From the NCBI RefSeq assembly GCF_006345805.1, contig NC_043003.1:27776001-27840000 (forward strand): a stretch of 64,000 nucleotides of DNA, written 5' to 3'. Every line of letters starts with the position of its first letter. Positions within the stretch are counted from its first letter, which is position 1. This DNA comes from Octopus sinensis. Its lineage: Eukaryota. A program made the translations under genes and the position numbers. The notes beneath the pieces were generated by a model. That model made no database searches. It worked only from the letters and a program-made list of their open reading frames with translations, and was not told the DNA's origin. Below are positions 4,800-63,895 of this stretch, piece by piece.

Positions 4800-5204
4800 C
4801 AATCATGTGTGGTAAGTAGCTTGTTTACCAACCACATGGTTCCGGGTTCAGTCCCACTGAGTGGCACCTTGGGCAAGTGTCATCTACTATAGCCTCGGAC
4901 CGACCAAAGCCTTGTGAGTGGATTTGGTAGACGGAAACTGAAAGAAGCCCATCGTATATATGTATATGTATATATATATATGATTGTGTGTGTACATGTT
5001 TGTGTATCTGTGTTTGTCCCCCCCCCCAACATCGTTTGACAATTGATGCTGGTGTGTTTACGTCCCCATAACTTAGCGGTCGGCGGAAGAGACCAATAGA
5101 ACAAGTACTAGGCTTACAAAGAATAAGTCCTGGGGTCGATTTGCTCGACTAAAGGCGGTGCTCCAGCGTGACCATAGTCAAATGACTGAAACAAGTAAAA
5201 GAGT
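4800..5204 (+). mobile_element. tRNA-derived SINE, family A (GGCACCTTGGGCAAGTG core)
   Basis: tRNA-like head (TGTGGTAAG..GGTTCAGTCCC) and tail ending GACTGAAACAAGTAAAAGA. Further copies at about 5234-5410(-), 6755-6890(+), 9160-9495(-), 10050-10210(-), 45945-46212(-) and 50008-50340(+). Confidence 0.85.
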
Positions 5205-5221
5205 ATACATACATACATACA

Positions 5222-5252
<31 letters not shown>

Positions 5253-5455
5253 GACAGGGTTTCACACAGTTTTCGTCTACCAAGTCACTCACAAGGCACT
5301 GGTCGACCTGAGGCTGCATTAGAAGACACTTGCTCTAATTGTTGTACAGTGGGACTGAACCCGAAACTTTGCAGTTGGAAAGCCAGCCTCTTAACCACAT
5401 TGCAATGCCTAAATGTATGTATGTATGTATGTATGTATGTATGTATGTATGTATG

Positions 5456-14757: not shown

Positions 14758-17700
14758 GGATACAACAAGGCGGTGGTCTGTCCAGTATTCTGCGCCTCAC
14801 ATGGTCTTCGTAATTCGTGCGTCTTGCCTGTCCCTCTTCCTTATGATAACATTGTCGATGAGGTGCCAGTGCTTTGAGCGGGGATGCAACCATGACGTTC
14901 TGTTGTTGGTGGGGAGGTTAAAGGTGGTGTTGGTGATCAGGAGGCCATGCTCTGCACAGGTCTGGAGTAGTAGCAGACCGTTGCTGTTGCAGTTGCCAAC
15001 TCCATGTTTCCCAATCACTCCTTCCCAGGAGACACTATCACGACCAACTCTCGCATTGAAGTCACCTAGAATGATGAGTTTGTCTGCGCGGGGAGCCGCG
15101 GTAATGACAGAGCTCAAATCTTCATAGAACTTGTCCTTGGTCTCATTTGGATTCGTCATGGTGGGGGCGTAGGCGCTGACAATGGTGGTATACTTCTGTT
15201 CGCGACAAAGGTGGAATCTCATCGTCATTAGGCGATCATTCATACCTTTTGGGGGACCAACCAACTTGCCAGCCAATGTCAGCTTAACTGCAAAGCCAAC
15301 TCCAGCCTATCTTCTCTCTTCAGGTCCACATCCACTCCAAAAGAAACTGTATCCTGCACCTTTTTCCTGTAGTTCACCTTCACCTGGCAGCCTGGTTTCG
15401 CTGAGAACAGCAATGTCGATGTTATATCTGGCGAGTTCATTTGCTATGAGTGCTGTGCGTCTCTGGGGTCTCTCCGACTCGTCTATGTCAAGAAGCGTAC
15501 GAAAGTTCCAAGCATCGAGAATGAGTGGTGTACTCCTCGCTCTTTTTCTTTGTTCTTTGTTTCGACCGCAGTGTGTAGGGTCCCCTCCTGTCGTGGTAGG
15601 CTGGCTAGGGTAGGTGGAGCAGGCAATGTTTGGGGCACCTTTTCTAGTCCGTTCCTCATGCCATGGAGGTGGGCAGTACGTTCCTAAATAGGACTGCTCA
15701 GTCGCCCAGACGGTTGCCGAAATCCACTACTGCTCCAGGTCAGTGAATAGCGACCCTGTGGCCTGAGCCGCTTGTGTGCAGGTTTGCGGCTACGACTTCC
15801 AGTGTACCCACACCTGTCGCTTCGTCGTGTGCCTGTCGCCACAGGACTTTGGGATGAAAGGATGGAAAGAAGGATGAAAGATGACTTGCGCGAGGAAACT
15901 TTGTTTAAAGTGAGGAAGGGTTGCGCATAGCCGACCTCACTCTCTCGTCCAGATCAAGACGACTTGGGATAGAACCGGATGCAGTGAATAACCAAGATGT
16001 CCTATAGTGCCTCATCTTGCCCTATGCACTCCACGGTGCCCTGCTGTAACCTCCCTCTTCTCCGTTGAAACCGTTCTGGTGGTTTCTTCTGTAGAATCAG
16101 CCGGCTCCAGTCTTCGCATGTGTAGGTAGGCAAGCCCTAACTCGCCGATGGTTTAAGACCGGTCGGCTACCCTTACTTAGTTTAGCTGGCTAGTCGAAGC
16201 CGTTGCCCGGAGTGTGGCCGCTGTTGCATACAAATAGCTACTAGGAGCCACAAGTGAGAGCTGAGTGCAGGTGGGGACCAAGGCGGATCAACTACTCCGA
16301 GGAGGAGCACGACTGTCGCCCCGTCAGAGGTACTACCCCTCCCGTACACCCCATACACCACCGCCTTGTTGTATCCAAACTCAACCTTAGATTTCAGCCC
16401 AAGAGACGACCACAAAATAGGAAAGCACCAACACGCTTGAACATCGGTAAGCTGAAGGATAGCAACGTCAAGCAGTAATTTACTGATACATTGGAGCAAC
16501 GCTTGGACCCCCATTGTGCTACAAGGCAAGGATGTTGAGGAAGCCTGGGCTGCACTCCGGGTGACTTTGTACGACACAGCCATGGAATGCCTTAGGCCAT
16601 CTACAAAGAAGCACAAGGACTGGTTTGATGAGAACTGCGCGGAGATCAAGCAACTTCTAGAGGAAAAGCATAGTGTTTACAACGCTCACCTCACTGACCC
16701 CAATTGCGGATTGTACGGAGCAAAATCCAAACGAGGTTGCGCCACATGCAGGATTCCTGGCTTAGCAGCAAAACAGACATGATCCAGGGCTTTGCAGACA
16801 GAAATGACATGAAGATTTTCTATGACAGCTTGAAGGAAGTTTACGGCCCTACTACTGCAAGAACACTATCTCCTCTCCTTAGTGCTGACGGGGCAACACT
16901 GATCACCGACAAGGAAAAGGTTTTAGAGAGATGGTCTGAACATTTCGACTGCGTACTGAATAGACCTTCCACCATCAATGGTGAAGCCATCGATAGGCTA
17001 CCTCAAGTTCCCGTTGAGGAGTCAATGGACGTCAAACCAACTTTGGAGGAAATTCAGAAAGCATGCCGCCTACTGTCCAGTGGCAAAGCACCTGGTCCGG
17101 ACTCCAGCCCATCTGAAGTATTCAAAGAATGCGGTATGGCCCAGGAAAATTCACCAGCTGTTTCAGCTCATCTGGATGCACGAGACAGTGTCTCAAGACT
17201 TCAAGGACGCCTCCATCATCCACCTCTACAAGCGAAATGGAAACCACCAGGTCTGCGACAATTATTGCGGAATTTCACTGCTGTCCATCACAGGCAAGAT
17301 CCTGGCTAGAGTTTTGCTCAACCGCCTCATTGCACACCTAGAGCAGGGTCTCCTACCTGAGAGCCAGTGTGGCTTCCGGAAAGAGCATGGGACTATCGAC
17401 ATGGTGCCTACTGCTAGACAGCTGCAGGAGAACTGTCTGGAGAAGAACGTCGACCTTTACTCCACCTACATCGACCTGACCAAGGCCTTTGATACCGTTA
17501 GTAGAGAAGGTCTCTGGAGAATCTTGGCGAAGTATGGATGCCCCAGAAAATTCACTACCATCGTAAGACAACTACACGATGGCATGTTGGCAAGGGTACA
17601 GGACAACGGAGAGACCTCTGATCCTTTCCCTGTCTCCAACGGGGTGAAACAAGGATGTGTCCTTGCTCCCACCTTGTTCAGCCTTACGTTCTCAGCCATG

Positions 17701-18795
17701 CTGACAGATGCTTTCAGGGACACAGACATTAGCATCGGCATCAAGTACCGGTCCAACGGTTCAGTCTTCAACCTCGGGAGGCTCAAAGTGAAAACCAAGG
17801 TTTCAGTAGACACCGTCAACGATCTCCTGTTCGCCAATGACTGCGCTCTCAATGCTGCCACTGAGTCCAACATGCAGCACAGCGTTGACTTGTTCTCTGG
17901 CGCCTGCAACAACTTTGGCCTTACTATCAATACAAGACTGAGGTAATGTATCAGCCAGCTCCAACCAAGCCCTACATTGAACTCAACATCACCATCAACG
18001 GGAAACGACTGAACGTGGTGGACAAGTTCACCTACCTTGGTAGCACACTCTCTAGAAATGTTGTCGTCGATGACGAAATCAATGCCAGACTCGCCAAGGC
18101 AAGCGCTGCCTTCGGCAGGCTACGCAACACTGTCTAGGACAGGAGGGGGATCACCATCATGACAAAGATCAAAGTGTACTGGGCTGTTGTTCTCACAACG
18201 CTGCTTTACGGCTGCGAGTCCTGGACGGTCTACTGTCGTCATGCCAGGAAGCTGAACTACTTTCATACAATACGCCTCAGAAACCTTCTCGGCATAAAGT
18301 GGCAGGACATGATCCCGGACACCAAGGTACAAATACGTGCTAACCTGCCCAGCATCCATACCATCTTGATGCAGTCTCAGCTTCGTTAGGCAGGGCACGT
18401 AGCTCGCATGTCAGACAATCGATTACCAAAAAGATTGCTCTTTGGCGAGCTGCAAAAGGGAAAGCGCTCACAAGGCGACCAGAAGAAGCGCTTTGAGGAC
18501 ACCCTGAAAGCCTCACTGAAAGCCTTCAACATCGACCGTGACACTTGGGAGCAGTCTGCTCTAGACAGAGAAGAGTGGCGATTAGCTATCCACAAGGGTG
18601 TCAACACACGCGAGACCAATAGGATCGCTGCTGCAGAAGACCGCAGACAAGCCAGGAAAAACAGAGCTAATAACCCTGTAGCAGGTGCTACCATTCCCTG
18701 TCCACACTGTCAAAGACTCTTTCGGGCGCAGACTGACCTCGCTAGCCATCTGCAGACTTACAAAACAAGCCCAACCCCACTTCAGTATCCAGCGT
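14758..18795 (+). mobile_element. RTE-clade (BovB-like) LINE, near full length, decayed; 5' UTR and APE endonuclease inverted (14758-16356, minus)
   Basis: Minus: DAWNFRTLLD, VLSETRL, IILGDFNARVG, HLIDNVI, WTDHRL. Plus: KDWFDEN, DLTKAFDTV, GVKQGCVLAPTLF, LLFAND, YGCESW and C-terminal CPHC..H. Confidence 0.92.
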
Positions 18796-20037: not shown

Positions 20038-21822
20038 ACTACATAACAAGGAGAACACAAACTATACCTACATAACGAGGAGAACACAAACACAAACTGT
20101 ACCTACATAACAAGGAGAACACAAACACAAACTGTACCTACATAACAAGGAGAACACAAACACAAACTGTACCTACATAACAAGGAGAACACAAACACAA
20201 ACTATACCTACATAACAAGGAGAACACAAACACAAACTATACCTACATAACCAGGAGAACACAAACACAAACTATACCTACATAACCAGGAGAACACAAA
20301 CACAAACTATACCTACATATCCAGGAGAACACAAACACAAACTATACCTACATAACAAGAACACAAACACAAACTATACCTACATAACAAGGAGAACACA
20401 AACACAAACTATATCTACATAACGAGGAGAACACAAACACAAACTATACCTACATAACAAGGAGAACACAAACACAAACTATACCTACATAACAAGGAGA
20501 ACACAAACACAAACTATACCCACATAACCAGGAGAACACAAACACAAACTATACCTACATAACAAGGAGAACACAAACACAAACTATACCCACATAACCA
20601 GGAGAACACAAACACAAACTATACCCACATAACCAGGAGAACACAAACACAAACTATACCCACATAACCAGGAGAACACAAACACAAACTATACCTACAT
20701 AACAAGAACACAAACACAAACTATACCTACATAACAAGGAGAACACAAACACAAACTATACCTACATAACAAGCAGAACACAAACACAAACTATACCCAC
20801 ATAACCAGGAGAACACAAACACAAACTATACCTACATAACCAGGAGAACACAAACACAAACTATACCTACATAACCAGGAGAACGCAAACACAAACTATA
20901 CCTACATAACAAGGAGGACACAAACACAAACTATACCTACATAACAAGAACACAAACTATACCTACATAATAAGGAGAACACAAACACAAACTATACCTA
21001 CATAACCAGGAGAACACAAACTATACCTACATAACCAGGAGAACGCAAACACAAACTATACCTACATAACAAGGAGAACACAAACACAAACTATACCTAC
21101 ATAACAAGAACACAAACACAAACTATACCTACATAATAAGGAGAACGCAAACACAAACTATACCTACATAACCAGGAGAACACAAACACAAACTATACCT
21201 ACATAACAAGGAGAACACAAACACAAACTATACCTACATAACAAGAACACAAACACGAACTATACCTACATAACCAGGAGAACACAAACACGAACTATAC
21301 CTACATAACCAGGAGAACACAAACACAAACTATACCTACATAACAAGGAGAACACAAACACAAACTATACCTACATAACAAGGAGAACACAAACACAAAC
21401 TATACCTACATAACCAGGAGAACACAAACACAAACTATACCTACATAACCAGGAGAACACAAACACAAACTATACCTACATAACCAGGAGAACACAAACA
21501 CAAACTATACCTACATAACAAGGAGAACACAAACACAAACTATACCTACATAACCAGGAGAACACAAACACAAACTATACCTACATAACAAGGAGAACAC
21601 AAACACAAACTATACCTACATAACCAGGAGAACACAAACACAAACTATACATACATAACCAGGAGAACACAAACACAAACTATACCTACATAACCAGGAG
21701 AACACAAACACAAACTATACCTACATAACCAGGAGAACACAAACACAAACTATACCTACATAACCAGGAGAACACAAACACAAACTATACCTACATAACA
21801 AGGAGAACACAAACACACTATA
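20038..21822. repeat. 35-bp minisatellite, about 50 copies (ACCTACATAACMAGGAGAACACAAACACAAACTAT)
   Basis: Directly visible head-to-tail array with 32- and 29-bp deletion variants and no spacers. Confidence 0.95.
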
Positions 21823-23689: not shown

Positions 23690-24081
23690 GGCATAGGAGT
23701 GGCTGTGTGGTAAGTAGCTTGCTTATCAACCATATGGTTCCGGGTTCAGTCCCACTGCGTGGCACCTTGGGCAAGTGTCTTATACTATAGCCTCGGGTCG
23801 ACCAAAGCCTTGTGAGTGGATTTGGTAGACGGAAACTGAAAGAAGCCCGTCGTATATATGTATATATATATATATATGTTTGTGTGTCTGTGTTTGTCCC
23901 CCCAACATCGCTTGACAACCGATGCTGGTGTGTTTACGTCCTCGTAACTTAGCAGTTCAGCAAAAGAGACTGATAGAATAAGTACTAGGCTTACAAAGAA
24001 GAAGTCCTGGGGTCGATTTGCTCGACTAAAGGCGGTGCTCCAGCATGGCCACAGTCAAATGACTGAAACGAGTAAAAGAGT
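23690..24081 (+). mobile_element. Family A SINE, full length
   Basis: Complete head, core and tail. Confidence 0.88.
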
Positions 24082-32710: not shown

Positions 32711-35700
32711 CTTTATTCACCATAAGGTTGAGAAAAAGAGGGGACAAAACAAACGTTGGGGTCAGGGTATCGAATGAGACGAAACATATGAATAAACAAA
32801 CAATTAAAATATATACAATTAAATGAGAATGAGTGATTAACAAAAAATGAAGCGGAGGACGCGGTCGACCCCACAAACCACATACTCACACTGAAGACTT
32901 TGCTTTCTCCTTTTTCACATTCTCGATTAAACAGGTTCTTTCACTCGCAACATACTTGCTATAGACTTCCATCTTTTACGAAACACACTTTGCGACAGGC
33001 ATTTCTTCTCCAGCGTTATTTTCCGTTTCATGTGGAAAACGAAAAAGTCGATTAGCTCGAGACTGGAGATAAACATGCCTGTTGCAATTCCTTTTACTCT
33101 CGTCTTCCACACTACTTCTTTCGCCATAGCAACTACCGAAAGAAAACAGGCTCGCTCCTCCCTATTCAGGAAGGTCGGCGGAACTATCTTAATTACAGAT
33201 TCGCTCGACAGTTGTACTCTTCTCGAATGCGACAGCAGGTGTTCGACATAAGTCCAGAGTTCAGTCACCTTGGGGCATTGCACAATCGCGTGCAGGACAG
33301 TTTCACTGTCCCTCTTACATCTTGCACAAACCGGTGAAGGTGCACACCCATGTCTAAAGAGCTTATCTCGAACCGGTAAAGCTCCTCTGTAACATTGCCA
33401 GGCCAGGGACTTTTGGTAATTATCCATAGGCCCCGGACCGAATGTTCTTTGGAACAGGCTGGCCAGTTGATTTTCGTCGAAGCCCAGAGTTTCTCCTAGG
33501 ACGTCGTCACACTTAAACTCTACTAACCCTCTATAGAAGAACGAGGTAGTAGCCCCGCCACCGGCGTTGCCCGACTGGGAGAGAAGCACGAGTGCCTGAT
33601 AGCACTCTGCATGCCACATGCCCAACCTCGGTCTACACTTGATCACAAACGATGTGAACTGTGGAAATAACAGCTTGACAAACGGAGACCACACCTGCTC
33701 ACCGTCCAGGTAAATCCAGAGGTGCCTAATCCTGAGCGCATGTCTGCGCATTTTTAGCCACGGCATCCCTAACCCACCCTTCAGCGGCTTTTGGCAGCAA
33801 ATAGAGCGCCTTACAAGAGGTCTGCTGCCCCTCCACAAAAAGCGAAAGAGCATGCGTTCCAGTTTGTTCAGCCACGAATCGGGGCAAGGCACTACGGTTA
33901 GGCGGTAAGTGATTACAGAGGCGATAAACACCTCTGCAACCTCCGCCCTCCCTTTCAAGGACAGCTTCCGCTCAGACCATGTCTGAGTTAGGAGAGTCAC
34001 CTTTCTCGCCACCTCGCTCCAGTTCTTCTATATCTGGAGATCTGAACCTAACCAGATCCCAAGCATTTTCACCGGTCCTTCCGTCCAACGTCCTACGACG
34101 CTGTCGGAAGACATCGACTTGCCCCTCCAGGTGCCGAGTTGCAAGCCGACCGATTTATCCCGGTTGACTTTCGCTCCTGCCACCGCTTCGTAGTCCCTTA
34201 AGGCCTCACACACCCACTGTAGGTGCTCGACTCGGGAAACGATGACGGTGATGCCGTCCGCATACGCCGAAGCTGACTTTCCGCACCCTAGATCTTGCGG
34301 AGTGCCTCTCATAGTTTCCAACCTCCTCAGCAATGGCTCGAGGGCCAAAACGTAGAGAAGCGGGGAGAGAGGACACCCTTGACGTACCGAACGTTCAATG
34401 CTGAACGGCTCCGAAAGGAAACCATTTACTCGAACTACCGATTCGATGTTGCTGTATAAAGCGATGATCCATCCGCGGAAGGTCGGGCCGAAGCCAGCCG
34501 CCGCCAGATACTGATGGTCCACCCTATCAAACGCTTTCGATTGGTCCAAGTGGACCATAGCCCCACCCTTGCCAGGAATCCTATTTACCCTTTCTAAGGC
34601 ATAGCGTAGAAAGTGGAGATTGTCGTGGATGGTCCTTCCAGGGATGGCGCAAGTTTGCGCCTCGCCAACAAGTTCACCCACGACCCTCGCCAACCGTTTT
34701 GCTAAGACCTTGGCCAAGATCTTCGACTCTGCGTTAAGCAGAGTGATAGGCCGGAAATTATCAATTAAATCCCCCTTGTTTGGGTCCTTTCTTAACAGCG
34801 CTACCACCCCTCGGCTCACAGACTTAGGAATTCTCCCGTTCTGCTGCCAGTTGGTGTACACGCATGCAAGTAGGTGCCCAAACAAGTCTGGCATGCTACT
34901 ATAGAGTTCGTAAGGCAGACCATCGAGTCCCGGCGATTTGTCCCCGCCGCAGTCTGCCAACATATCCTCGACTTCTTTGGGTGTGATCGGTGCCTCACAA
35001 GATTCCGCGTCCGGCCCCGATAGACGCGGCGAACCGGCTAGGAAGTCTGCGAGCTTCTCCCCGCGCTCCAGCTCGCCGCTCCTCCCGAATAGCTGGGCGA
35101 AATGATCATGAAACACCTTGCACATCTCCTCGGGTTCGTTTACTAATCGACCATTTGGGCCCGTCAAGGATCGAATGGTTGAGTTGTTGCCATGCTGGCC
35201 CTCTACTACCCGGGCCCATCCGGCTGCGTTGATCCCTTCCTGTCTCATTGCACGGATCTTAGCCCTGACAATGCACCCTTCATGTTTAGCTTTGAGATGT
35301 CGGTCGAGTGCTAACCTCGCCGCTAACACTTTCGATGCACTGCCTGACCTCATTGCCTCCTCTATTGCCTTAACTAGTTCCTTTTCTACTTTGTTTCTAG
35401 CACTAGCTAGTTCTTTGCTAAACCTAATTGACTCAAATTTGATGGCTCTTTTCAGGGCGTACCACCATTTGTTGTTGATAATGGATCCGGTTAACGCCCT
35501 CATTACTAATTGTTTAATCCGATTCCTGTAGGCTTCACAGTCCAATAGTGACTTGTTTAGCTTCCAGTAACCGGTACCTCGTCTACACATGCTATCTATG
35601 TCGAGCGTACAGGTCACTAATTTGTGATCGCTGTAGCTGACAATATGGTGTTGTGGACAGCTAAGTATTTTCTTATCTTTCCTTCTAGTTATGATTCTAT

Positions 35701-38223
35701 CGATATAAGATCTGGACGACCCGTCGTTTCTTGGCCAGGTCCACGCTGGAGTGTCTGGATGGTCCAGTCTGAATCTATCTGCCAATTCGAAACGACTTAG
35801 CATATCGTTGAGGTGAGGTAATCCCCTCCTATTCTTTCTCGAGCCAACATAATCTACGCTTGCATCGCAAATTATGTTGAAGTCACCTAGCAATACTAAC
35901 GTGTTCGACGTGCCAAGAAAATTCTCTAGGCTTTTGAAATACTCTTTCTGCCCGGCTTTTCCTTCGCAGGGAGCATAGACAGCGACCAGCCTGAACACTT
36001 TACCACTGCTGTGCGTCACATCCAAAACGACCAACCTGCCTTCCGGATCTATAAAGACAGTTCTAATCTCTAAATCCAGGTTTATACTGACCAACACTGC
36101 CACTCCCCCACCCCCTCCAGGTCGACAGGGAGAAATGTATTTCTCATAGCCGTTTAGAAGGGGCGAAAAAGCCTGCAGTCCACTCAGTCTGGATTCGGTA
36201 ATTACCACTACATCCAAACGATGCGACCTAAGGTCGTTAAGGAGGTAGCCTTGCTTCCAATACGACCCCAGGCCGCGAATATTTATACAACCGAGTTTAA
36301 ACGAGAATGTGAAAAATTAGTTGAATGTTTAAAACTTACTGTTTTAACAGAAGAAAGGGTGTAGTTTCACCCTCATCTTTTCTGTCTGTGAGTGTTGTGT
36401 TTTGCGAGGTCAGTTTTTTTGCGAATTGCTTGTACAGATGGCTTGAAAAGTTCATCTGTAACGGGCCTACGTCCTCCGCAAGATTTTTTTATTTCAAAAT
36501 AATCAGCGTTATCTATTGTATAAAATTCGACATTTTCAGAAATAGTACTATTTATATCTGTTACGATATATTTTTTCGCCGATTTCAGTAAATTAATTTT
36601 TTCTCTTAATGGGTTATTGTTTTTATTTATCGCCGTGAAGGTGTTTCTTTTTTTTTGTTAGGTGATTGTGGAGGGGGGGGGGGGGTGTTTGGGGGTTTGT
36701 AGGTGTGTGCGTGCTTGTGGTAGGTGTGTGTGTGTTTGTGTGTGCTTTTTCCAGTGTGTGTGTTTTTTTGGCTACGTGTGTGTTTGCGACTGTATTTGTG
36801 GGTGTGGGTGTGCTTGTCTGTGTCAGAGTATAGTCCTGTGTATCCGAAGAGGGTGGATTTTTCCGTTTCCGTCTTCTTTTTGAAGGTTCTATGGTGACCC
36901 ACTCCTGGATGTTGTTGTTGTTGTTGTCATCGTTGTTGTCGTTGTTTTCTCCCGTTGTCGGCTGAATTTCGGCAATTGGGGTGCGCGACGTGGCTGCTAT
37001 TTCTAGCGTGAAGTTGTTTTCGGCGTCGTGCTTGCCTCTGCAGTATTTTCTTTGGCTGTCTTCTTGCAGCTCGACCTTATGTGGCCTTTCTCGCCACATT
37101 TATAACACCTAGGTTTTCTTCCCTCGACTATTACCATCAAGCTGGTATTATCTCCAATGGTGAGGGAGCTTGGCAATTTTTCCAAGTCCGAGGGGTTCAC
37201 TTGGATCACAAGCTCTAAGTCTTGTCCATACCAGGTCGTGGGGCGATATCTTTTAGACTGAAGAATGGCAATTTCTTCCTCTTTGCCTAAGAGAATCGCT
37301 ACTGTTATAAAGTCCACATCGATTTCGGGCGGAATGTCCGTGACCGTTATCCTGGAAGTTCTCATTCCTAAATAAAAAGGTAGAAGAACTACCTCGTCTG
37401 ACTTCAACGTTCTTGTTGAATGTTCCCTAGCTATTTCTTCGCTAGGGAAACGCACCTCTACCGTGCCGAAGCGACTACCCCTTGTTATATACGTAGTTTG
37501 TTGCCATATCGGCCTCAAACATTTTTCAACGGCTTCTCTCTGCACGAAGTCAATTTTCTTATTTTTTACATTATATGTCTTGTATATGAGTTTTTTCTCT
37601 CCGTCGCGTAAATTAATTCACTGGGAGGGAACAACTTCACATTATCACCTTCTTTTTTTAGTAGTCCTTGGTATTTCTTTAATTCTTCCTTGTTAATGAC
37701 TATATTTTCACAGGGGCGAGTTGCTGCACTCGCAAAATTTATTTTTGACTTTTCTTGTCGTGTAGTAGCTTCGCCAGACATATTGTCGTCTGCTTTTGTA
37801 ACGAGCGCGTGAGACGTCTCTTTACTTTTACCTTCCTCCTCCCGCATTTTCGCCTTCATGCCTTCAAACAAATTTTCAACGTTTTCCTCCGACTCGGAGG
37901 AGATTGGTGGCAAATTCTCATGTTTTTCGTCGCTTCCCCCTTGAAACAAGGGGGAAAGAACAGCAAAGCTCTGCTGCAACAGCAGAAAAGAAGTGGCCTC
38001 GACGACCAAAACAGCAAATTTTCAAACTTTTCAGCACAAAAACAATCTTTCACTGCGGAGCAAAGAATAACACAACCGATCAGAGAGATAATCCCGAGCA
38101 AGGCCGGGTATCTCTGTTAGTATATATAACTTAAAATAAGCGGAAAATGGAGAAAACTTTTGATCAACAAACAAACAAATTGAACAACATCGGAGCAAAG
38201 AATAACAACCGATCAGAGAGATA
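32706..38223 (-). mobile_element. Tx1/L1-clade LINE, near full length, inserted in (TC)n; ORF1 with CCHC knuckle, ORF2 EN-RT, frameshifted
   Basis: ORF1 CYKCGEKGHIRSSC. ORF2 CINIRGL, VVITES, LLGDFN, SDHK, LDQSKAFDRVDH, RQGCPLSPLLY, YADG (D to G) and LPVRDKL..CARC..HAIVQC. AATAAA just before the (TC)n tract. Confidence 0.93.
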
Positions 38224-40944: not shown

Positions 40945-41356
40945 TTTTACTTGTCTCAGTCATTTAACTGCGACCACGCTGGAGCACCGCCTTTAATCGA
41001 GCAAATCGACCCCGGGACTTATTCTTTTGTAAGCCCAGTACTTATTCTATCGGCCTCTTTTGCCGAACTGCTAAGTAACGGGGACATAAACACACCAACA
41101 TCGGTTGTCAAGCAATGCTAGGGGAACAATCACAGACACACAAACACACACACGCATACATACATACATATATATATATACATATACATACATACGACAG
41201 GCTTCTTTCAGTTTCCGTCTACCAAATGCACTCACAAGGCTTTGGTCGGCCCGAGGCTATAGTAGAAGACACTTGCCCAAGGTGCTACGCAGTGGGACTG
41301 AAACCGGAACCATGTGGTTGGTAAACAAGCTACTTACCACACAGCCACTCCTGCGC
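40945..41356 (-). mobile_element. Family A SINE, full length
   Basis: Reverse complement of the 23690 copy. Confidence 0.88.
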
Positions 41357-41909
41357 CCGTATTGCTAAGATTTTAAAAATCCGCAATGTCTATAATTCTA
41401 AATTTAATTTTTTTACAAAATCGAAAAATTAAACAAAACTTTAATTCAAATGAAATTTCCCTGTTTTTTTTTTTCTTTTTCATCGTGTGTAGAACACCAT
41501 TCCGCCAAAAATGTAATTTGATCAACTATTACTAGTGTTGACGCTCCAGTGATTTTGGCCCCAAGTGTTGGGTGACTAGAAAGAAAAGTTGTTTGGCTTT
41601 GCGAATGGTGACAACTCGTCACATGCGACATCTTGAATTTATGAGAGAACGCAAAAAGAAAAATATGAATATGTAAAAAAACAAATTAATATTTTTAATA
41701 ACAATTAACTGAATTCTATGAAACAAGGAGAACATTTGTGATATTGAAATTTATTGATACATATGCCTGTGGGACGTTTACACAAGAAAAGCGTATTATA
41801 AAAATTAAGACAAAATTTAAAATATCAACTATATTTAAGAAGACTCGATTTTAACAGTCAACTCTCTTAATTAAAATAAAATTAGTGCTGATGTTAATAT
41901 AAAGATCTT

Positions 41910-42957
41910 CACCCGTTAACAAAAACAATTTTAAAAACCCAGTCAGATGGGTGTTAACAACTGTGTAGAAAACGAATATGACAAAAACAATTTGCACAAA
42001 CGAACCGGGAGTGGGGGGGGGGCATTCGTAAAATTCGCAAGATCCGATTTTTCCGTCATATCTTTTGGGAAAATGGAAATATATTGATTTTGTTCTAACG
42101 GAATCCCACGTTTTTGATTATGGAGAATCCGAGTCTGAAAAATTTTTTTCAAAAATTGCATTTTCCAAACTTCAATTTAGACTGCGGGATGGCGAGGGAG
42201 GGGAACTTGGGTCGGAGTTTTTCATTAAAAAATTGAAATTAAAATTTGAATTTGTGTTAATTTTTTCCATGTTCTTAATCTCCGTATTTTCCCACGTAAA
42301 TTGGTAGATGAAAAAAAATTCGAAAAACGTTACAAAAAAACAGAAAACACTTTAATTTCACGTAAATTACTTTGTCATACATATTATTGCGGGAAATTAA
42401 TCTGAAAGAAATCTTTGCAGAAAGGTGAGTAGATTGTCTTTCATTATGTCATCAATTTTGTGAGATTTAGCTGTTATTTATAGCATGTGGATAGCCTGCT
42501 TGAAGGCCAATATCGTAGAATTGGATGGGGAAGGGGTTGGGGTATACATATGTTTTTTTTGTTGAAAAATTAAAATTTTACAAATTTTTTTTGAGAATCG
42601 TCTTCTTCGTATTTTTCTACGTATTTGGAAAAAAAAATCCAGAAAAAGTGAAAAACGAAGGGGGTGGGATGTGGATTCGATATTTGAAAAAAATTTTCAG
42701 AATTGGATCCTCCATAACCAAAAACGTGGGATTCCGTAAAAAAAAAAAAAAAAAAAAAAAAGAAAAAAAGCAATACATATCCATTTTACCCGAAAGTTAT
42801 GACGGAAAAATCGGATCTTGTGAATTTTTCCAAAAGTCCTCTCCCTCTCCTCAGGTTCGTTTGCGCAAATTTTTTTGTCATATTCGTTTTCTACACAGTT
42901 GTTAACACCTAGTGGGCTGTTTAAAAAAATTTTTTTTTCAGTTTTTGTTAACGGGTG
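41910..42957. mobile_element. Non-autonomous DNA transposon with long imperfect TIRs
   Basis: cacccgttaacaaaaac..gtgttaacaactgtgtagaaaacgaatatgacaaaaa is mirrored at 42880-42957; no ORF. Confidence 0.65.
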
Positions 42958-44264
42958 CCGCACTATTACCGCGTGTGACAGTAGAGGTGAATGCATGTTT
43001 ATAAAAAGAAATATTTTTTGGTATAATTAAGATATTGTGTTGTCGAAAGAAAAAAACAGCATTAATTTAATAATTTCTAGGGGCTAATGCAGATTCGCAC
43101 CTCACCTTGAAAAATGAATATTTTTTGAAAAAGTTTATTCGGATTCCTAAGTCGGAGATTACGGATAAGTAAAAACATAAAAAAGTTTTCCAAAATTTTA
43201 CCCCCGCTTCCCCAAATTGTAAATGTATTGTTATATATTGAAGTGTGGAAATTTCATTAAACCAGGTATGTAATTGTCACTTTCTATATTCGCTTGGCTA
43301 AACTGTAGAAATCGTTGTTTCAACATTGTTGCTAAAATGCCCGTATTTTTCCACGTTACATACCTGCTTTAATGAAATTTCCACACTTCAATGTACAATA
43401 CTTTTAAAATAGGGATGCGGTGGGCAGCTTATCAACGATGTGTTAATTTGTTTTATTGAACATTTTGTGTAGCAACAGTCAGTAGTTTAGCCTACTAGAA
43501 AGTTCTGGCGTGCATCGATGTGTATAAAGTCTGTGTTAATGTACATATGTAAGGGAATAAAGAGCATGTAGATATCACCTACGTGAGTTTTCACAGAATA
43601 GAACTGGAAAGAGAAAGTGAGGTGTTTGTATACACGTATGTGTATGCATATAAACTTTATATACATAATATAGACAGATGGATTTGTGTGTGTATATATA
43701 TATATATATATAATATATATATATATATACACGTATATATATGCATATGTATAAGCATACATATATATGTTGCGTATGGGCATATGTTTGTATGTAAAAT
43801 AGGTCGTGTGTTTATATATAAATGAAAAAATATTTCAATAAAGAATTCACCAAGAGCATTTTCTTTTCTTTTCTTCATTTTCATCCATTTCTTTGTCCTG
43901 TCACTTACGGAAGGCCGAAATATTTGAAGAGAGTATGTTGTCAGAGTTAATATTTTAAGAAATTATATTGCAAGAATCTATCATGATTTTGTCCGCATAT
44001 TATTGATTGAATGGCAGTCTTTTAATGACCTGTTTTGTAAATAAATCCTGATTAGCAACTTGTCCTTGATACATGTTTTAAGCTGAAACTCCAATATCAG
44101 CGTATAATTAATGGAGAATATCTAGTTGTTGAATATGGTTTGAGATAAGGTTGGGAAACGCTTCTTTTCGTCGGACTCTTTAAAAACTTGATAAAACATT
44201 CGAAGGAATCTTGGTGCCACATGGCATGCTGCTTTATGTCGCAGAACGAGAACTATTTCATATC

Positions 44265-44585
44265 TTAGTCACGGAACAATATACTCAAACCGTCAGTCTT
44301 TGTTGTCATCTTGGGAACAAAATCACCTTTTTTTAGAGAAACCGGAATCTTGAAATTTTGTTGACTTTTTTCAACTTCTTTGTATGCATAAAGTCTCCTG
44401 TTGTCGGAGCTATAGCATTTCCCGTTTTTTTCGTAAACGTCAATAGGTGGGATGTTGGAGGGCGATTTCTTACCCGTTTTAATATCATCAATAAAATTTG
44501 ATATTGGTGTCCCGTCTTGAAAAGTGCGCTTAATATCATCTTGAGAAAAACGGATCTCACTTGGTTTCATTGTAGGGTGAGCCAT
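44265..44585 (-). CDS. 106-aa single-exon protein, ParB/sulfiredoxin-like (polymorphic-toxin-like) domain; paralog A
   Basis: Intact ORF with an in-frame TAA at -9 and agcATG context. Motifs IRFSQDDI..F and IDVYEKNGKCYSSDNRRLY. 48/101 aa identical, gapless, to 62716-63030. Confidence 0.8.
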   Translation of the reverse strand: MAHPTMKPSEIRFSQDDIKRTFQDGTPISNFIDDIKTGKKSPSNIPPIDVYEKNGKCYSSDNRRLYAYKEVEKSQQNFKIPVSLKKGDFVPKMTTKTDGLSILFRD

Positions 44586-45109
44586 GCTGGTTTACAAATA
44601 TCAACTTCGTATCCAATGAAGAAGTAATTGTTATGGGTAATAAGAATGAAAATCTTTTGGTCAGTATATAACTAGTGATTTCTCTATTTGACGGAGAAAA
44701 CAGTTTTAAAAATGTAGAATCAAATTTTATATTCACGTCAGTAGATAGCCGGTCCTTATTTTAACGAATCGGATTAATGGAATTCAAAGAAAGTTGACAG
44801 ACTTGTTTAATCTTGGACAATATCCGGAAGTATCGAAACGTGTTCGTATAGACAAGTGTTCTGTGGTGACTCGATTGTAGGCGAAGTTCAGTAAATATAT
44901 ATTGTAGTGGTGGAGGTGGTTGGTGCGTAGGACAGGTTCATTTCTCGGAAATAAATGTGAAACAGTTTTTCAAGGAAATTGAAATGGAAGTAAATATTTT
45001 GTATTTCCTAACTTATCAGGACGTATTCTGAGAAAGAATACTTAAAGATAACTTGGTATATGCGTTGGTGGGGGTGCATGGCTTCAAAATCTTTGATTCA
45101 TATATATAT

Positions 45110-57330: not shown

Positions 57331-57356
57331 ACAGACACACACACGCGTGCGCGCAC

Positions 57357-57405
<49 letters not shown>

Positions 57406-57557
57406 CCCATATATATGACGGGCTTCTTTCAGTTTCCGTCTACCAAGTCCACTCGCAAGGCTTCGGTCAGCCCGAGGCAATAGTAGAAGGCATTTGCCCA
57501 AGGTGCCATGCAGTGGGACTGAACCCGGAACTGTGTGGCTGGTAAGCAAGCTACTTA
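57098..57557 (-). mobile_element. Family A SINE
   Basis: Head, core and tail present. Another full copy lies at 58434-58840(-). Confidence 0.85.
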
Positions 57558-57719
57558 CCATACAGCCACTCCTACACCTATTTGGTGAAATTTTGGTGGA
57601 AGATTTTAATTTAGATAACTTTAATATGGAAATTTCTATCAAGACCAAGAGCAGATTCGTGTGGGTTGGTATCAAAAGGGTTAAAAGCAGTAAGTTTGTG
57701 TCCAGAACTAAGGACAGTC

Positions 57720-58435: not shown

Positions 58436-58877
58436 CTCTTTTACTCTCTTACTTGTTTCAGTCATTTGACTGCGGCCATGCTGGAGCACCGCCTTTAGTC
58501 GAGCAAATCAACCCTGGGACTTATTCTTTGTAAGCCCAGTACTTATTCTATCGGTCTCTTTGGCCGAACCGCTAAGTGACGGGTATGTAAACACACCAGC
58601 ATCGGTTGTCAAGCAATGCTAGGGGGACAAACACAGACACACAAACATATACACACACACTTATATATATATACATATATACGACAGGCTTCTTTCAGTT
58701 TCCGTCCCCCAAATCCACTCACAAGGCATTGGTCGGCCCGGGCCTATAGCAGAAGACACTTGCCCAAGATGCCACGCAGTGGGACTGAACCTGGAACCAT
58801 GTGGTTGGTTAGCAAGCTACTTACCACACAGCCACTCCTATATATCTATATATATATATAATATATATCTATAATAA

Positions 58878-60486: not shown

Positions 60487-62160
60487 AAGGGGTTGGACAA
60501 AATAATGGAAATACCTATCATCATAGAATCATAGCATCATAATTTTGAAATATCTATAAAACCGTCAAAAGCTTGTTTATTTTTATGTTTTTTATTTATT
60601 ATTAGTGTTAGTTAATATGTTTTGCTAAAATCGCTGTTTCTTTTCAGATATCATCAGAAAAAGGTAATTAGAATTCATTAAAATGACAGATCTATCAGAC
60701 TTTCAAAGAAGTCAAATTGTTGGTACTTGTATGGCAGGCACTAGTGTAACGAAAACAGCCAAAATGTTTGGTGTATCAAGAAGTACTGTCTCAAAAGTAA
60801 TGACAGCCTTTGAAAAAGAGGGAAAAACTTTGTCAAAACAAATCTCTGGAAGAAAACCAAAACTTTCAGATAGGGGCCGTCGGACTCTTATGCGAATTGC
60901 TAGAAAGGATCACAAAAGTACAGCTCCCAAAATTACTGCAGCGCTTACAGTTCTATGTTTAAGAGATGAGGAATTATGTACATTATTTACATTAGACAGA
61001 TATTTGTCCTCATCTTGTTTGTTGTTAACACAAAGTTTCCGCTGATATACTCTCCAGCCTTTATCAGGTGTCTTGGGGAAATTTTGAACCTGGATTCTCA
61101 TTCCTAAGGTATTTGTTGTTGTTGTTGTTGTTGTTGTTATGAAAGTCACTGCCTGGAATCGAACTCGGAATCTTGGGTTAGTAGCCCGTGCTCTTAACCA
61201 CTATGCCATATGGCGAGCCTAAATCAAAAGTGTCTTTACCACCCCGTGAACAACTATTCAGCCGAAACGTTGTGTTAACAACAAACAAGATGGGGACAAA
61301 TATCCGTCAAATATAAATAATGTAAATAATGTACTGCAGAGCTTAATGACCACCTCGAGAACCCAGTTTCCACAAAAACTGTTTGCCGGAGCTGCACAAA
61401 GCTGGATTTCACAGGAGGGCTGCTATCAGAAAACTACTACTTTAAAAACAAACGTTGCAAAGCGTTTAGAGTAGAGTAAAAATCTACAGAATTGGTCCCT
61501 AGAGCAGTGGAAGAATGTTATTTTCTCGGATGAGTCATCCTTTACCCTATTTCCGACCACTGGCCGAGTATACGTAAGGAGACAGCCAAAAGAAGCATTT
61601 GACCCAGACTGCCTTCTTCCAGCTTTTAAACTATTAAACATGGAAAGGGATCTGTGGTGATCTGGGCGCCGGGGGGAGGGGGGCTATATCTTGGAAATCC
61701 GCCGGCCCAATGGTTTCCCTTCAAGGCAGAATTATCAGTCAAGACTATTCAAGCATTTTATTTGGTCAAATTCATCCTATGATTGCAGAACTGTTTCTGG
61801 AGGGAAACGCAATCTTTCAGGATGATAATGCACCAATTCACAAAGCTAAAGTTGTTACTGAATGGCACGAGGAACATTCTAATGAAGTTGAACATCTTAT
61901 CTGACCACCACAGTCCCCAGAACTCAATATTAAGGTGCAAACAAGTAAGGAGTCAATATCCTCCACCGTCATCACTACAAGAACTGGAGACTGTTTAGAT
62001 GAAGAATAGACAAAAATTCCTTTGGAAACAATTTAAACTTCGTATGAGTCCATACCTCGTAGAATTCAAGCTGTAATTACTGCCAAAGGTGGTCCTACCC
62101 CATATTAAACTAAATTTGTTTGAAATTTTAAGGTGTTTCCATTATTTTGTCCAACCCCTG
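60487..62160 (+). mobile_element. Tc1-family transposon, full length, transposase pseudogene interrupted by an insertion
   Basis: TIRs aggggttggacaaaataatggaaa.acct at both ends with TA flanks. Paired-like HTH from 60683; VIFSDES, FQDDNAPIH and PPQSPELN. Confidence 0.93.
60942..61339 (-). mobile_element. tRNA-head SINE plus an inverted copy of its own tail, with 8-bp target duplication TACTGCAG
   Basis: TACTGCAG at 60934-60941 and 61332-61339; removing the insert restores the transposase KITAELNDHL. tRNA-like head at 61141-61212 (minus). Confidence 0.7.
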
Positions 62161-62715
62161 TATATATATAATTTATATATACAATATATGTCTCCGTCAA
62201 GTTATCTTTAATTATTCTTTCCCAGAATGTGTCTTTATTAGTTAGGAAATACAAAACATTTACTTTCATTTTAATTTCTAAGAAAATAATACGATATTGT
62301 CATATCATTTTCATTGAAAAACTTTTTATTTTCACTTTCATTTCCAAGAAAGAAACCCCTCCTACCCAGCAACCTCCACTACAATATATATTTACCGAAC
62401 TCCACCTACAATCGATTAGACAGGATCGAGTCGCCACGAAACACTAGTCTATACGACACATTTCAATCCCTCCAGATATTATTCAAGATTAAACAAGTCT
62501 GTCAACTTTCTCTGCATTTCATTTATTGGATTCGATAAGATAAAGAGCGTCTATCTACTGAAGTAAATATAAATTTTGATTCTACGTTTCTACAATTGTG
62601 TTTTCTCTGTGAATCTTAGAAATCACTAATTATATATTAACCAAAACACTTTCATTTTTATTACCCACAACATCAACTTCTTTATTAGATACGAAGTCGA
62701 TATTTATAAACCAAC

Positions 62716-63030
62716 ATGAAGCGCATGAATCCAAGAGATATCCGTTATACTCAGGATACAATCAAGCCTGAATTCCAAAACAGGAGATCATTAGATGATG
62801 TTATTAATGACATTAAACGTGGTAAAATTTCGCCTGACGATATAGAAGTTATGGACGTTTACCAAAGAGATGGAAAATACTATAGTGCCGGCAACAGGAG
62901 ACTTTATGTATTCAAACGAGTACAAGTAAGTAAACCATATTTGGAGGTTCCAGTTAATCTAAAACCAGATAGTTTTATTCCCAACTTCACAACAAAGAAT
63001 GATGGTTTGAGTGTAACAATCCGTGGCTAA
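62716..63030 (+). CDS. 104-aa single-exon protein, ParB/sulfiredoxin-like (polymorphic-toxin-like) domain; paralog B
   Basis: Intact ORF with an in-frame TAA at -9 and aacATG context. Motifs IRYTQDTI..F and MDVYQRDGKYYSAGNRRLY. Gapless alignment to paralog A. Confidence 0.8.
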   Translation: MKRMNPRDIRYTQDTIKPEFQNRRSLDDVINDIKRGKISPDDIEVMDVYQRDGKYYSAGNRRLYVFKRVQVSKPYLEVPVNLKPDSFIPNFTTKNDGLSVTIRG

Positions 63031-63779
63031 AATATGGAATACTACTCGTTCTGCAACATAAAGCAGCATGCTATGTGGGCACCTAAATTTCTTCGCATGT
63101 TTTTATCAAATTTTTAAAAGAGTCCTATCAGTAGAAGCGTTTCCCAACCTTATCTGGCATAACTATAGATGTGTACCCGCCAGCTTTGTTGCCTCATAAC
63201 TGCCAGAAAAATGGATGAATTTTTAACAAATACCACTTAGATGCTATAGATTCAGAGTATATAGGGATTTGTGGGAAAGAAATTTCCGATGTGGAGAGGA
63301 GTTTCGAAAAATTCACACGATCCGACTCTTCTCCCTTATAACTTTCATGAAATTTCATGCAAATAGCTTTCAAACGGCATAGCTTATAAAGTAATTAGTG
63401 GAGAAAATTTTTTCTGTACACACCTGTAGTTAAGCTCCTCATCTCACCGTATTCAACAATGATATATTCTCCGTTAGTAATACATTCTGATACTGAAGTT
63501 CCAGCTTAAATCGTGTCGTATCTCAGCCAAGTTGTTAATCAGGATTTATTTACAAAACAGGACACTAAAAGATTGTCGTTCAACCACAAATATCTGGACA
63601 AAATCATGGTAGATTCTTGCAATATGATTTCTTTAAATATTGACTCTGCCAACTTACTCTCCTCAAATATTTCACCCGTCAGTGACATCATGACAAAGAA
63701 ATGGATAAAAGTAAAAGGAAAAAAAAAAAAAGAAACTGCTCATGATGATTTTACATATACACATGACCTATGTTACATA

Positions 63780-63802
63780 CACTACATACTCCCATACATA
63801 AC

Positions 63803-63834
<32 letters not shown>

Positions 63835-63859
63835 GTATATATATATATATGTATGTATA

Positions 63860-63895
<36 letters not shown>

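Follow-up and report, generated by a model that had tools for sequence, protein, structure and literature searches.

In a 64,000-nucleotide (nt) window of the Octopus sinensis genome (assembly GCF_006345805.1, contig NC_043003.1, positions 27,776,001 to 27,840,000; positions given below without a contig or locus name refer to this window), a small intronless gene is present as two inverted copies about 18 kb apart, here called A and B. Each copy encodes only a stand-alone domain of approximately 100 amino acids (aa), Tox-ParBL1, with the ParB/sulfiredoxin (Srx) fold. The coding sequences (CDS) of the two copies are more diverged than the non-coding DNA around them, and this excess is confined to copy B. 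We consider that the best explanation is asymmetric divergence, after duplication, of a toxin-derived ParB-like gene, rather than a symmetric, venom-style arms race, and would give this reading a probability of roughly 0.6. The duplicated units and their open reading frames (ORFs) are as follows.

43693-45055, minus strand: duplicated unit A, the gene together with about 470 nt of upstream and about 570 nt of downstream sequence (aligned to unit B with BLASTN and MAFFT)
44265-44585, minus strand: ORF A, 106 aa plus stop, stand-alone Tox-ParBL1 (ParB/Srx-fold) domain, the slower-evolving copy (ORF list, homologs, AlphaFold2/Foldseek, omega)
62198-63875, plus strand: duplicated unit B, inverted relative to A (BLASTN, MAFFT)
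62716-63030, plus strand: ORF B, 104 aa plus stop, the fast-evolving copy, with DNRRL changed to GNRRL and 27 unique residue changes

Alignment by BLASTN and MAFFT reproduced the inverted duplicate blocks that a first-pass annotation, made from the sequence of the window alone, had placed at 44143-45055 and 62198-63155. The homology was also found to extend 3′ of the gene, where 43693-44150 pairs with 63437-63875, and unit A reaches TA/TATG microsatellites at both ends. A tblastn search of the family against the 64-kb window found no third copy or pseudocopy within it.

For the CDS comparison, 101 codons (303 nt) of A (44570-44268) were aligned against B (62725-63027). The two were 71.0% identical (215/303), with 88 mismatches and no gap; 53 of the 101 residues differed, and 12 of the 48 codons for identical residues differed synonymously, all of which agreed exactly with the counts of the first-pass annotation. 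Mismatches at codon positions 1, 2 and 3 numbered 34, 26 and 28, and upstream of the aligned Met a 6-nt in-frame indel separates the annotated ORFs (MAHPTM in A, MKRM in B). The flanks were more similar, with identities of 82.1% for the proximal 5′ flank (138/168, the same count as given earlier), 83.8% for the entire 5′ flank (388/463) and 83.4% for the entire 3′ flank (337/404). For the first 125 nt 3′ of the CDS, the earlier statement of a higher identity than in the CDS held, but its count of 106/125 (85%) did not, as we obtained 109/125 (87%). Combined, the flanks contained 14 gap openings against none in the CDS, in line with the earlier remark that indels occur in the flanks only.

The difference in mismatch rate between CDS and flank was significant (Fisher’s exact test, odds ratio (OR) 2.09, p = 3.5e-6), and Jukes-Cantor distances were 0.367 for the CDS and 0.185 for the flanks (bootstrap 0.154-0.216). 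The nonsynonymous distance (dN) was 0.36 (0.27-0.47), an interval that does not overlap that of the flank, and in none of 5000 bootstrap replicates was dN at or below the flank distance (P(dN <= flank) = 0). The ratio of dN to flank distance was 1.94 (bootstrap confidence interval (CI) 1.40-2.69). The greater divergence of the CDS is statistically solid. Four methods gave a dN of 0.36-0.39, a synonymous distance (dS) of 0.27-0.40 and a dN/dS ratio (omega) of 0.92-1.24. Because the bootstrap CI of the pairwise dN/dS (0.91, CI 0.50-1.70) spans 1, omega for the pair is indistinguishable from 1 and positive selection is not demonstrated.

Changes were then assigned to lineages with a third member of the subfamily, P0159 (here called C), found on Logan contig L007 from run SRR11869385. 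The upstream region of L007 is homologous to the A and B flanks (5′ flank identities of 0.83 for A-B, 0.74 for A-C and 0.76 for B-C). Changes unique to B made up 15.2% of CDS positions (46/303) and 5.4% of flank positions (24/441; OR 3.1, p = 1e-5). Those unique to A made up 9.2% and 8.6%, which was not a significant difference, and those unique to C 10.2% and 16.6% (p = 0.018), as under purifying selection. Unique residue changes numbered 14 in A and 11 in C, against the 27 in B. The proportions of nonsynonymous and synonymous change per branch (pN/pS) were 0.080/0.144 for A, 0.163/0.126 for B and 0.084/0.198 for C, so that pS on the B branch is not above that of A or C and only pN is raised. 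The B-unique changes extend over the entire gene, codon 2 and the last codon included, become sparser at NRRLY and drop to the flank rate right outside the CDS. Many of the codon replacements in B involve two or three nucleotides.

A star-tree maximum likelihood (ML) model (GY94 F3x4), coded for this analysis, gave an omega of 1.77 for B and 0.42 for A and C (likelihood ratio test p = 0.025); estimates for copy A were about 0.4-0.55. When codons were partitioned by their conservation in 64 other family members, omega at the family-conserved columns was 0.18 for A and C against at least 1 for B (p = 0.008). The family-variable columns were near-neutral in all lineages (0.73 against 1.22, not significant). 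A protein ML tree, too short to resolve topology and used for its branch lengths alone, had terminal branches of 0.93 for B, 0.38 for A, 0.32 for C, 0.17 for P0001 and 0.25 for P0158; the proteins nearest to B were P0001 and then A.

A separate observation concerns the kinds of substitution. On the sense strand, the B-unique CDS changes (62725-63027) include 12 A>G and 1 T>C (binomial p = 0.008, post hoc), and the flank is symmetric (5 and 4). Many A>G changes of the B lineage produce residue replacements of the kinds that characterize A-to-I recoding in cephalopods (N>D, D>G, I>V or K>E). The excess could reflect selection on conservative replacements or a hard-wiring of edited sites. Neither hard-wired ADAR editing nor the retrocopying of an edited mRNA was adopted as the source of the B changes, given that the flank is symmetric and that purine transitions fit common conservative replacements.

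The hallmark motifs IR[FY][ST]QD, NRRL and FTT.[NT]DG.S are kept in both copies, in B as IRYTQD, NRRL and FTTKNDGLS, and of the 22 columns with the highest conservation B keeps 18 and A 19 by our own count. In B a Gly replaces the near-invariant Asp that precedes NRR, a lineage-specific D>G change giving a GxRR-like string, by which the site may have been either inactivated or re-tuned. At the flank rate about 4.9 indels would be expected in 303 nt between A and B (P(0) = 0.0075), and on the B branch the frame stayed open in 7-11% of simulations with 46-60 neutral substitutions. The joint chance of no stop and no indel on this branch is about 0.01 (a rough estimate of our own, with indels assigned in the three-way alignment), so a long neutral history of B is unlikely; a recent loss of its function is possible. 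With both ORFs open, NRRL kept and no indel gained, the preservation of reading frame and core motif claimed by the first-pass annotation is confirmed. Its companion claim, that the other residues evolve fast, has to be narrowed: A and B do differ preferentially at columns where the wider family is variable (entropy test p = 0.005), but B also has an excess at conserved columns, and only B is faster than its flank.

The conserved domain begins at residue 6-9 of A and B. Neither Pfam nor NCBIfam has a model of the family, and scans of both proteins with Pfam (E <= 1, PF02195 included), NCBIfam and PADLOC gave no matches. Searching PDB sequences, whether with a profile or the single protein as query, returned chance matches only. 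An exhaustive phmmer search found 1453 cluster representatives at E <= 1e-3. The best protein match is an entry from Octopus bimaculoides. P0001, a protein of this species, is B-like at its N-terminus and A-like elsewhere. Exact look-ups of A, B and P0001 in an assembly index returned no record, and no annotated gene was found for the two window ORFs. The domain forms the extreme C-terminus of many long proteins with RHS repeats, DUF6531 or PT-HINT (P0089, P0127, P0023, P0105). At locus L001 a stand-alone homolog, in the form of an orphan cassette, is preceded by an RHS/PT-HINT/Tox-GHH toxin and a SUKH-like gene, and at locus L002 a bacterial homolog overlaps a small DUF7660 gene within a BREX-type island. 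The L002 overlap (4890-5422) is at the stop and start codons, with BrxB-, PglX-like methyltransferase and PglZ-like genes as neighbors; the ParBL1/DUF7660 pair looks like a toxin-immunity or toxin-antitoxin pair in a BREX defense island.

As defined by Zhang, de Souza, Anantharaman, Iyer and Aravind (2012; PMC3482391), Tox-ParBL1 has a predicted ParB fold with an N-terminal S/T and an N-R-R. Its motif [NT][RT][RT], mostly N-R-R, is equivalent to the DGHHR of classical ParB toxins, and its relatives are the C-terminal toxin module of RHS, HINT and FilH polymorphic toxins with downstream immunity genes (PMC3482391). In our alignment of 69 sequences N62, R63 and L65 never vary, and the conservation of R64 is 90% or more; the N-terminal Ser/Thr is that of IRFSQD in A and IRYTQD in B, in a column that is S in at least 60% of the 64 other members. 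Since this C-terminal RHS/PT-HINT architecture and these motifs match the published definition, A and B are assigned to Tox-ParBL1. The link to toxins drawn by the first-pass annotation is sound in that the bacterial context of the homologs and the Tox-ParBL1 motifs show the domain to be toxin-derived. A and B are not canonical ParB proteins, as PF02195 does not match and A has DNRR and B GNRR in place of the GxxR/DGHHR P-motif. The AlphaFold2 model of ORF A had a predicted local distance difference test score (pLDDT) of 92.2 and a predicted template modeling score (pTM) of 0.85, and the top 37 Foldseek matches of this model in the PDB were all ParB, Noc, KorB, Srx, SbnI or serine kinase, with probabilities up to 0.99. 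With template modeling (TM) scores of about 0.5 and a best E-value of 9e-3, the agreement is at the level of the fold only and is not one of close similarity. The module is presumably nucleotide-binding or nucleotide-hydrolysing; no experimental study of ParBL1 was found in the literature searched.

Part of the upstream flank shared by A and B is probably a promoter, judging by the following short blocks of sequence.

44655-44670, minus strand: TATA-like block TATATAYTRACCAAAA, about 85 nt upstream of the ATG, candidate core promoter (three-way flank alignment, pattern search)
62631-62646, plus strand: TATA-like block TATATAYTRACCAAAA upstream of ORF B
44891-44909, minus strand: 19-nt block CACTACAATATATATTTAC, about 310-330 nt upstream of the ATG, candidate regulatory element (three-way flank alignment)
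62377-62395, plus strand: 19-nt block CACTACAATATATATTTAC upstream of ORF B

The TATA-like block is conserved in A, B and L007, and the 19-nt block is identical in all three.

Together these results suggest the following history. A ParB/sulfiredoxin-fold module would have been acquired by eukaryotes from bacterial polymorphic toxins, and a block of about 1.4 kb, with the promoter-like upstream region, the CDS and a downstream region, was duplicated in inverted orientation, leaving two genes that are presumably both expressed. Copy A continued in the usual mode of the family, under loose purifying selection (omega about 0.4-0.5) and at about the pace of its flank. Copy B took up amino-acid changes at approximately three times the rate of its own flank, family-conserved positions included, with its frame and signature motifs kept. 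Because B outpaces its flank even at conserved positions and has kept frame and motifs, we read it as a duplicate under a changed selective regime, which might be relaxation, directional or positive selection, or both, and could amount to a functional shift or neofunctionalisation. A smaller second contribution would come from the flanks, which may be a slow yardstick, synonymous sites in both copies being about 1.5-2 times as diverged as the flanks.

Several points weigh against asymmetric divergence as the explanation. Placing B above the neutral rate needs a neutral flank, and the ratio of dS to flank distance is 2.15 (bootstrap CI 1.18-3.64). As dS is itself about twice the flank distance, the contrast between CDS and flank is not purely an amino-acid effect. 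The flank also holds the conserved blocks TATATAYTRACCAAAA and CACTACAATATATATTTAC, so it is not wholly free of constraint; these blocks, and a dS above the flank distance in both A and B, suggest that the flanks evolve somewhat below the neutral rate. An omega_B above 1 is not significant (p = 0.31), and relaxation and positive selection are inseparable on codon data alone. The DNA comparison uses only three subfamily sequences and only 101 codons, and its three-taxon design leaves the tree unrooted, quartets that include distant paralogs being split about equally between AB/CO and AC/BO. L007 may be a paralog or an ortholog of A and B.

The alternative closest to the first-pass annotation is recurrent diversifying selection on the non-core residues of both paralogs, in the manner of venom or immune effectors and with neutral flanks. 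In venom and immune multigene families, such as snake venom PLA2 isozymes and conotoxins, exons diverge faster than introns and UTRs. Diversifying selection would agree with a dN 1.9 times the flank distance, with an overall omega near 1 in proteins that keep their core motifs, with the many two- and three-nucleotide replacements in B and with the toxin origin of the domain. Other octopus ParBL1 genes, which lie in tandem arrays (L004, L005, L006), provide replicate pairs. The O. sinensis tandem pair at L005 has 17 differences in 339 nt of domain-coding sequence and 3 in 1116 nt upstream, a 19-fold excess, with 15 residue changes, a dN of 0.062, a dS of 0.014 and a dN/dS of about 4-5. Codon positions 1-2 account for 16 of these 17 differences (P of about 0.01 by our own binomial test, with a third expected at position 3). 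Both copies carry derived states, and the changes are clustered in the strand and loop C-terminal to the main helix. The repetitive coding tail of this pair is also more diverged than the upstream DNA. The L005 pair agrees well with the diversifying-selection model of the first-pass annotation; two other recent pairs, at L006 (identical CDS) and at L004, show no coding excess, and for this reason we regard the excess as episodic and not universal in the family.

In the window pair, several observations speak against it. Copy A is no faster than its own flank, the family-variable columns, with omega at 0.73-1.22, are near-neutral and not above 1 in any lineage, and dS is raised too. No signal peptide was seen in A or B, whose N-termini, MAHPTMKPSEIRF and MKRMNPRDIRY, are hydrophilic (judged by inspection, with no predictor run), and lacking an N-terminal hydrophobic signal sequence they do not fit the analogy with secreted venom toxins. 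That analogy, put forward in the first-pass annotation, is further weakened by the one-sidedness of the acceleration, and the dN/dS, with its CI spanning 1, does not demonstrate positive selection. Diversifying selection on both copies is therefore, in our judgment, unlikely.

A mosaic history is harder to reconcile with the data and has, we believe, only a slim chance of being correct. Under it the flanks would have been homogenised later by gene conversion, or the B CDS overwritten from a distant member of the family, leaving the CDS older than the flanks. This would explain a dS between A and B (0.27-0.40) greater than the flank distance (0.185) and the failure of CDS quartets with outgroup paralogs to favor A+B over A+C. 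Conversion would also be expected in a family arranged in tandem and inverted arrays, and the mixed character of P0001 would fit. However, flank divergence is even (13-18 mismatches per 100 columns), the longest identical flank run is 28 nt against 30 nt in permutation, and the fast zone is bounded by the start and stop codons. Neither conversion tracts nor long identical runs were found, which speaks against gene conversion as the source of flank similarity, a possibility that the first-pass annotation had raised against its own inference. The pS of B (0.126) exceeds neither that of A (0.144) nor that of C (0.198). A comparison of B, in 60-nt windows, with four sampled distant octopus paralogs showed no window notably closer to any of them, and B is nearest to P0001 and then to A. 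With quartets that do not separate A+B from A+C and a dS above the flank distance, there is a low probability that such a mosaic arose from an unsampled donor.

That copy B is a dead or dying duplicate, drifting neutrally behind a frame left open by chance, is very doubtful. In its favor, the omega of B is consistent with 1, B has lost constraint at the columns that the family conserves and no longer has the near-invariant Asp in front of NRRL, and two of the four L004 copies have decayed. Against it, the joint no-stop (~0.07-0.11) and no-indel chance is only ~0.01, B retains nearly as many of the 22 most conserved columns as A (18 and 19), and a CDS rate three times that of the flank is not given by neutral drift alone if the flank is neutral.

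A more speculative extension of our reading, to which we attach little credence, is that the octopus ParBL1 genes form a system of genetic conflict, whether as an antiviral or abortive effector inside the cell or as a selfish pair of toxin and antidote. A-type proteins might then be the catalytic NTPase or nuclease toxin, and B-type proteins, with an altered P-motif and a changed conserved surface, a partner, decoy or antidote, with recurrent positive selection on the strand and loop after the main helix, as in the O. sinensis pair at L005.

Animal members of the family include the octopuses O. sinensis, O. vulgaris and O. bimaculoides, the tunicates Styela, Clavelina and Ciona, and the bivalves Tegillarca and Mya. 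Both the family and its occurrence in animals are on record, metazoan members having been listed in 2012 (PMC3482391); its expansion in octopuses, and the way it evolves there, appear to be undescribed. The L004 array (O. sinensis CM016883, locus 485-28740) consists of four copies with a 9.2-kb period and 97-98% identity, two of them with broken frames. The public gene model LOC118767871 covers 18.8 kb across several of these copies and may be a chimeric annotation. Three longer octopus paralogs, P0017, P0018 and P0019 (L005 10001-10648 and 13529-14272; L006 10001-11326), carry low-complexity Pro/Ser/Thr tails of variable copy number and terminate in CVIL, a CaaX-like prenylation box; A and B are tail-less. 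The CVIL ends suggest membrane anchoring of the longer paralogs.

One further feature belongs to the duplicated units.

63155-63441, plus strand: 287-nt insertion in the 3′ flank of unit B, missing in unit A, probably a short interspersed repeat (alignment gap)

Partial matches to this insertion, in stretches of approximately 84% identity, lie at window 42792-42844 and upstream of both O. sinensis ParBL1 paralogs at L005 (9322-9377 and 12851-12906). A small ORF in the duplicated 3′ flank (44097-44222 and 63068-63199) was considered as an immunity or antidote gene and rejected, as 1-nt indels break its frame between the copies. On the 5′ side of unit B is a degenerate Tc1/mariner-type element (60683-62195, plus strand) with a helix-turn-helix (HTH; Sleeping-Beauty-like) ORF, a DDE-region remnant and a terminal inverted repeat. 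The element stops 2-3 nt short of the unit B boundary, and its insertion there may have cut short the detectable homology.

The window as a whole has a GC content of 30-50%, dense TA, TATG and CA microsatellites, repeats resembling short interspersed nuclear elements (SINEs), and reverse transcriptase (RT)/endonuclease ORFs of the long interspersed nuclear element (LINE) type; an Rfam scan of it gave no match. Taken with the O. bimaculoides match, this composition marks the window as cephalopod nuclear DNA. A LINE-type retrotransposon at 32930-37545 (minus strand) has Exo_endo_phos endonuclease, RT and zf-RVT ORFs with a zf-CCHC ORF upstream, and a second RT fragment is found at 16978-17943 (plus strand), both in GC-richer parts of the window. 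SINE-like copies of about 210-230 nt and 85-91% identity (41133-41357, 57354-57578, 58620-58844, 4806-5017 and 23690-23897) occur on both strands, often adjoining TATG/CATA microsatellites. An array of a 35-nt tandem repeat (20054-21817) has ~51 copies with 93% matches, and its 2-kb bin shows a strong strand skew (GC skew -0.49, AT skew +0.55).

A domain that arose as an inter-strain weapon of bacteria has been retained in cephalopods, tunicates and bivalves, where its genes are small, clustered and fast-changing. Pairs in which the CDS outruns its flanks mark the copies, and the surface, under unusual selection, and offer an entry point to how animals use a ParB-fold toxin module. More generally, a CDS more diverged than its flanks between two copies can arise from one-sided relaxation or functional shift combined with a slow flank. 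A third sequence is needed before positive selection is invoked.

With venom and immune multigene families, the octopus genes have in common a CDS more diverged than the adjacent non-coding DNA, a kept frame and key residues, and a clustered multigene arrangement. In contrast to those families, omega of the window pair is not demonstrably above 1, one copy is accelerated, synonymous sites are raised, and a signal peptide/propeptide architecture is lacking.

Among ParB-fold proteins, the superfamily fold is shared, by Foldseek, with ToxB, with the ParB/Noc/KorB CTPases and with sulfiredoxin. Compared with canonical ParB, the octopus proteins have no HTH or dimerisation domains, and any catalytic activity of theirs is putative. 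By fold, the characterized protein nearest to them is ToxB, a CdiA toxin of the classical-ParB type, which hydrolyses ATP by means of its GxxR motif (bioRxiv 10.64898/2026.05.05.722872). A GxxR-type phosphate-binding motif would fall at the D/G-N-R-R position of the octopus proteins, going by motif order and not by residue-level superposition. ToxB is detected by PF02195 and carries GNHR, whereas the octopus proteins have DNRR (A) or GNRR (B) and no PF02195 match. With the Tox-ParBL1 domains of bacteria the octopus proteins share a length of about 100 aa, the ParB fold, the N-terminal Ser/Thr and N-R-R. Unlike these, they are bare domains, without a delivery or pre-toxin module or a recognizable neighboring immunity gene, and their genes are set in the tandem or inverted arrays of a eukaryotic genome.

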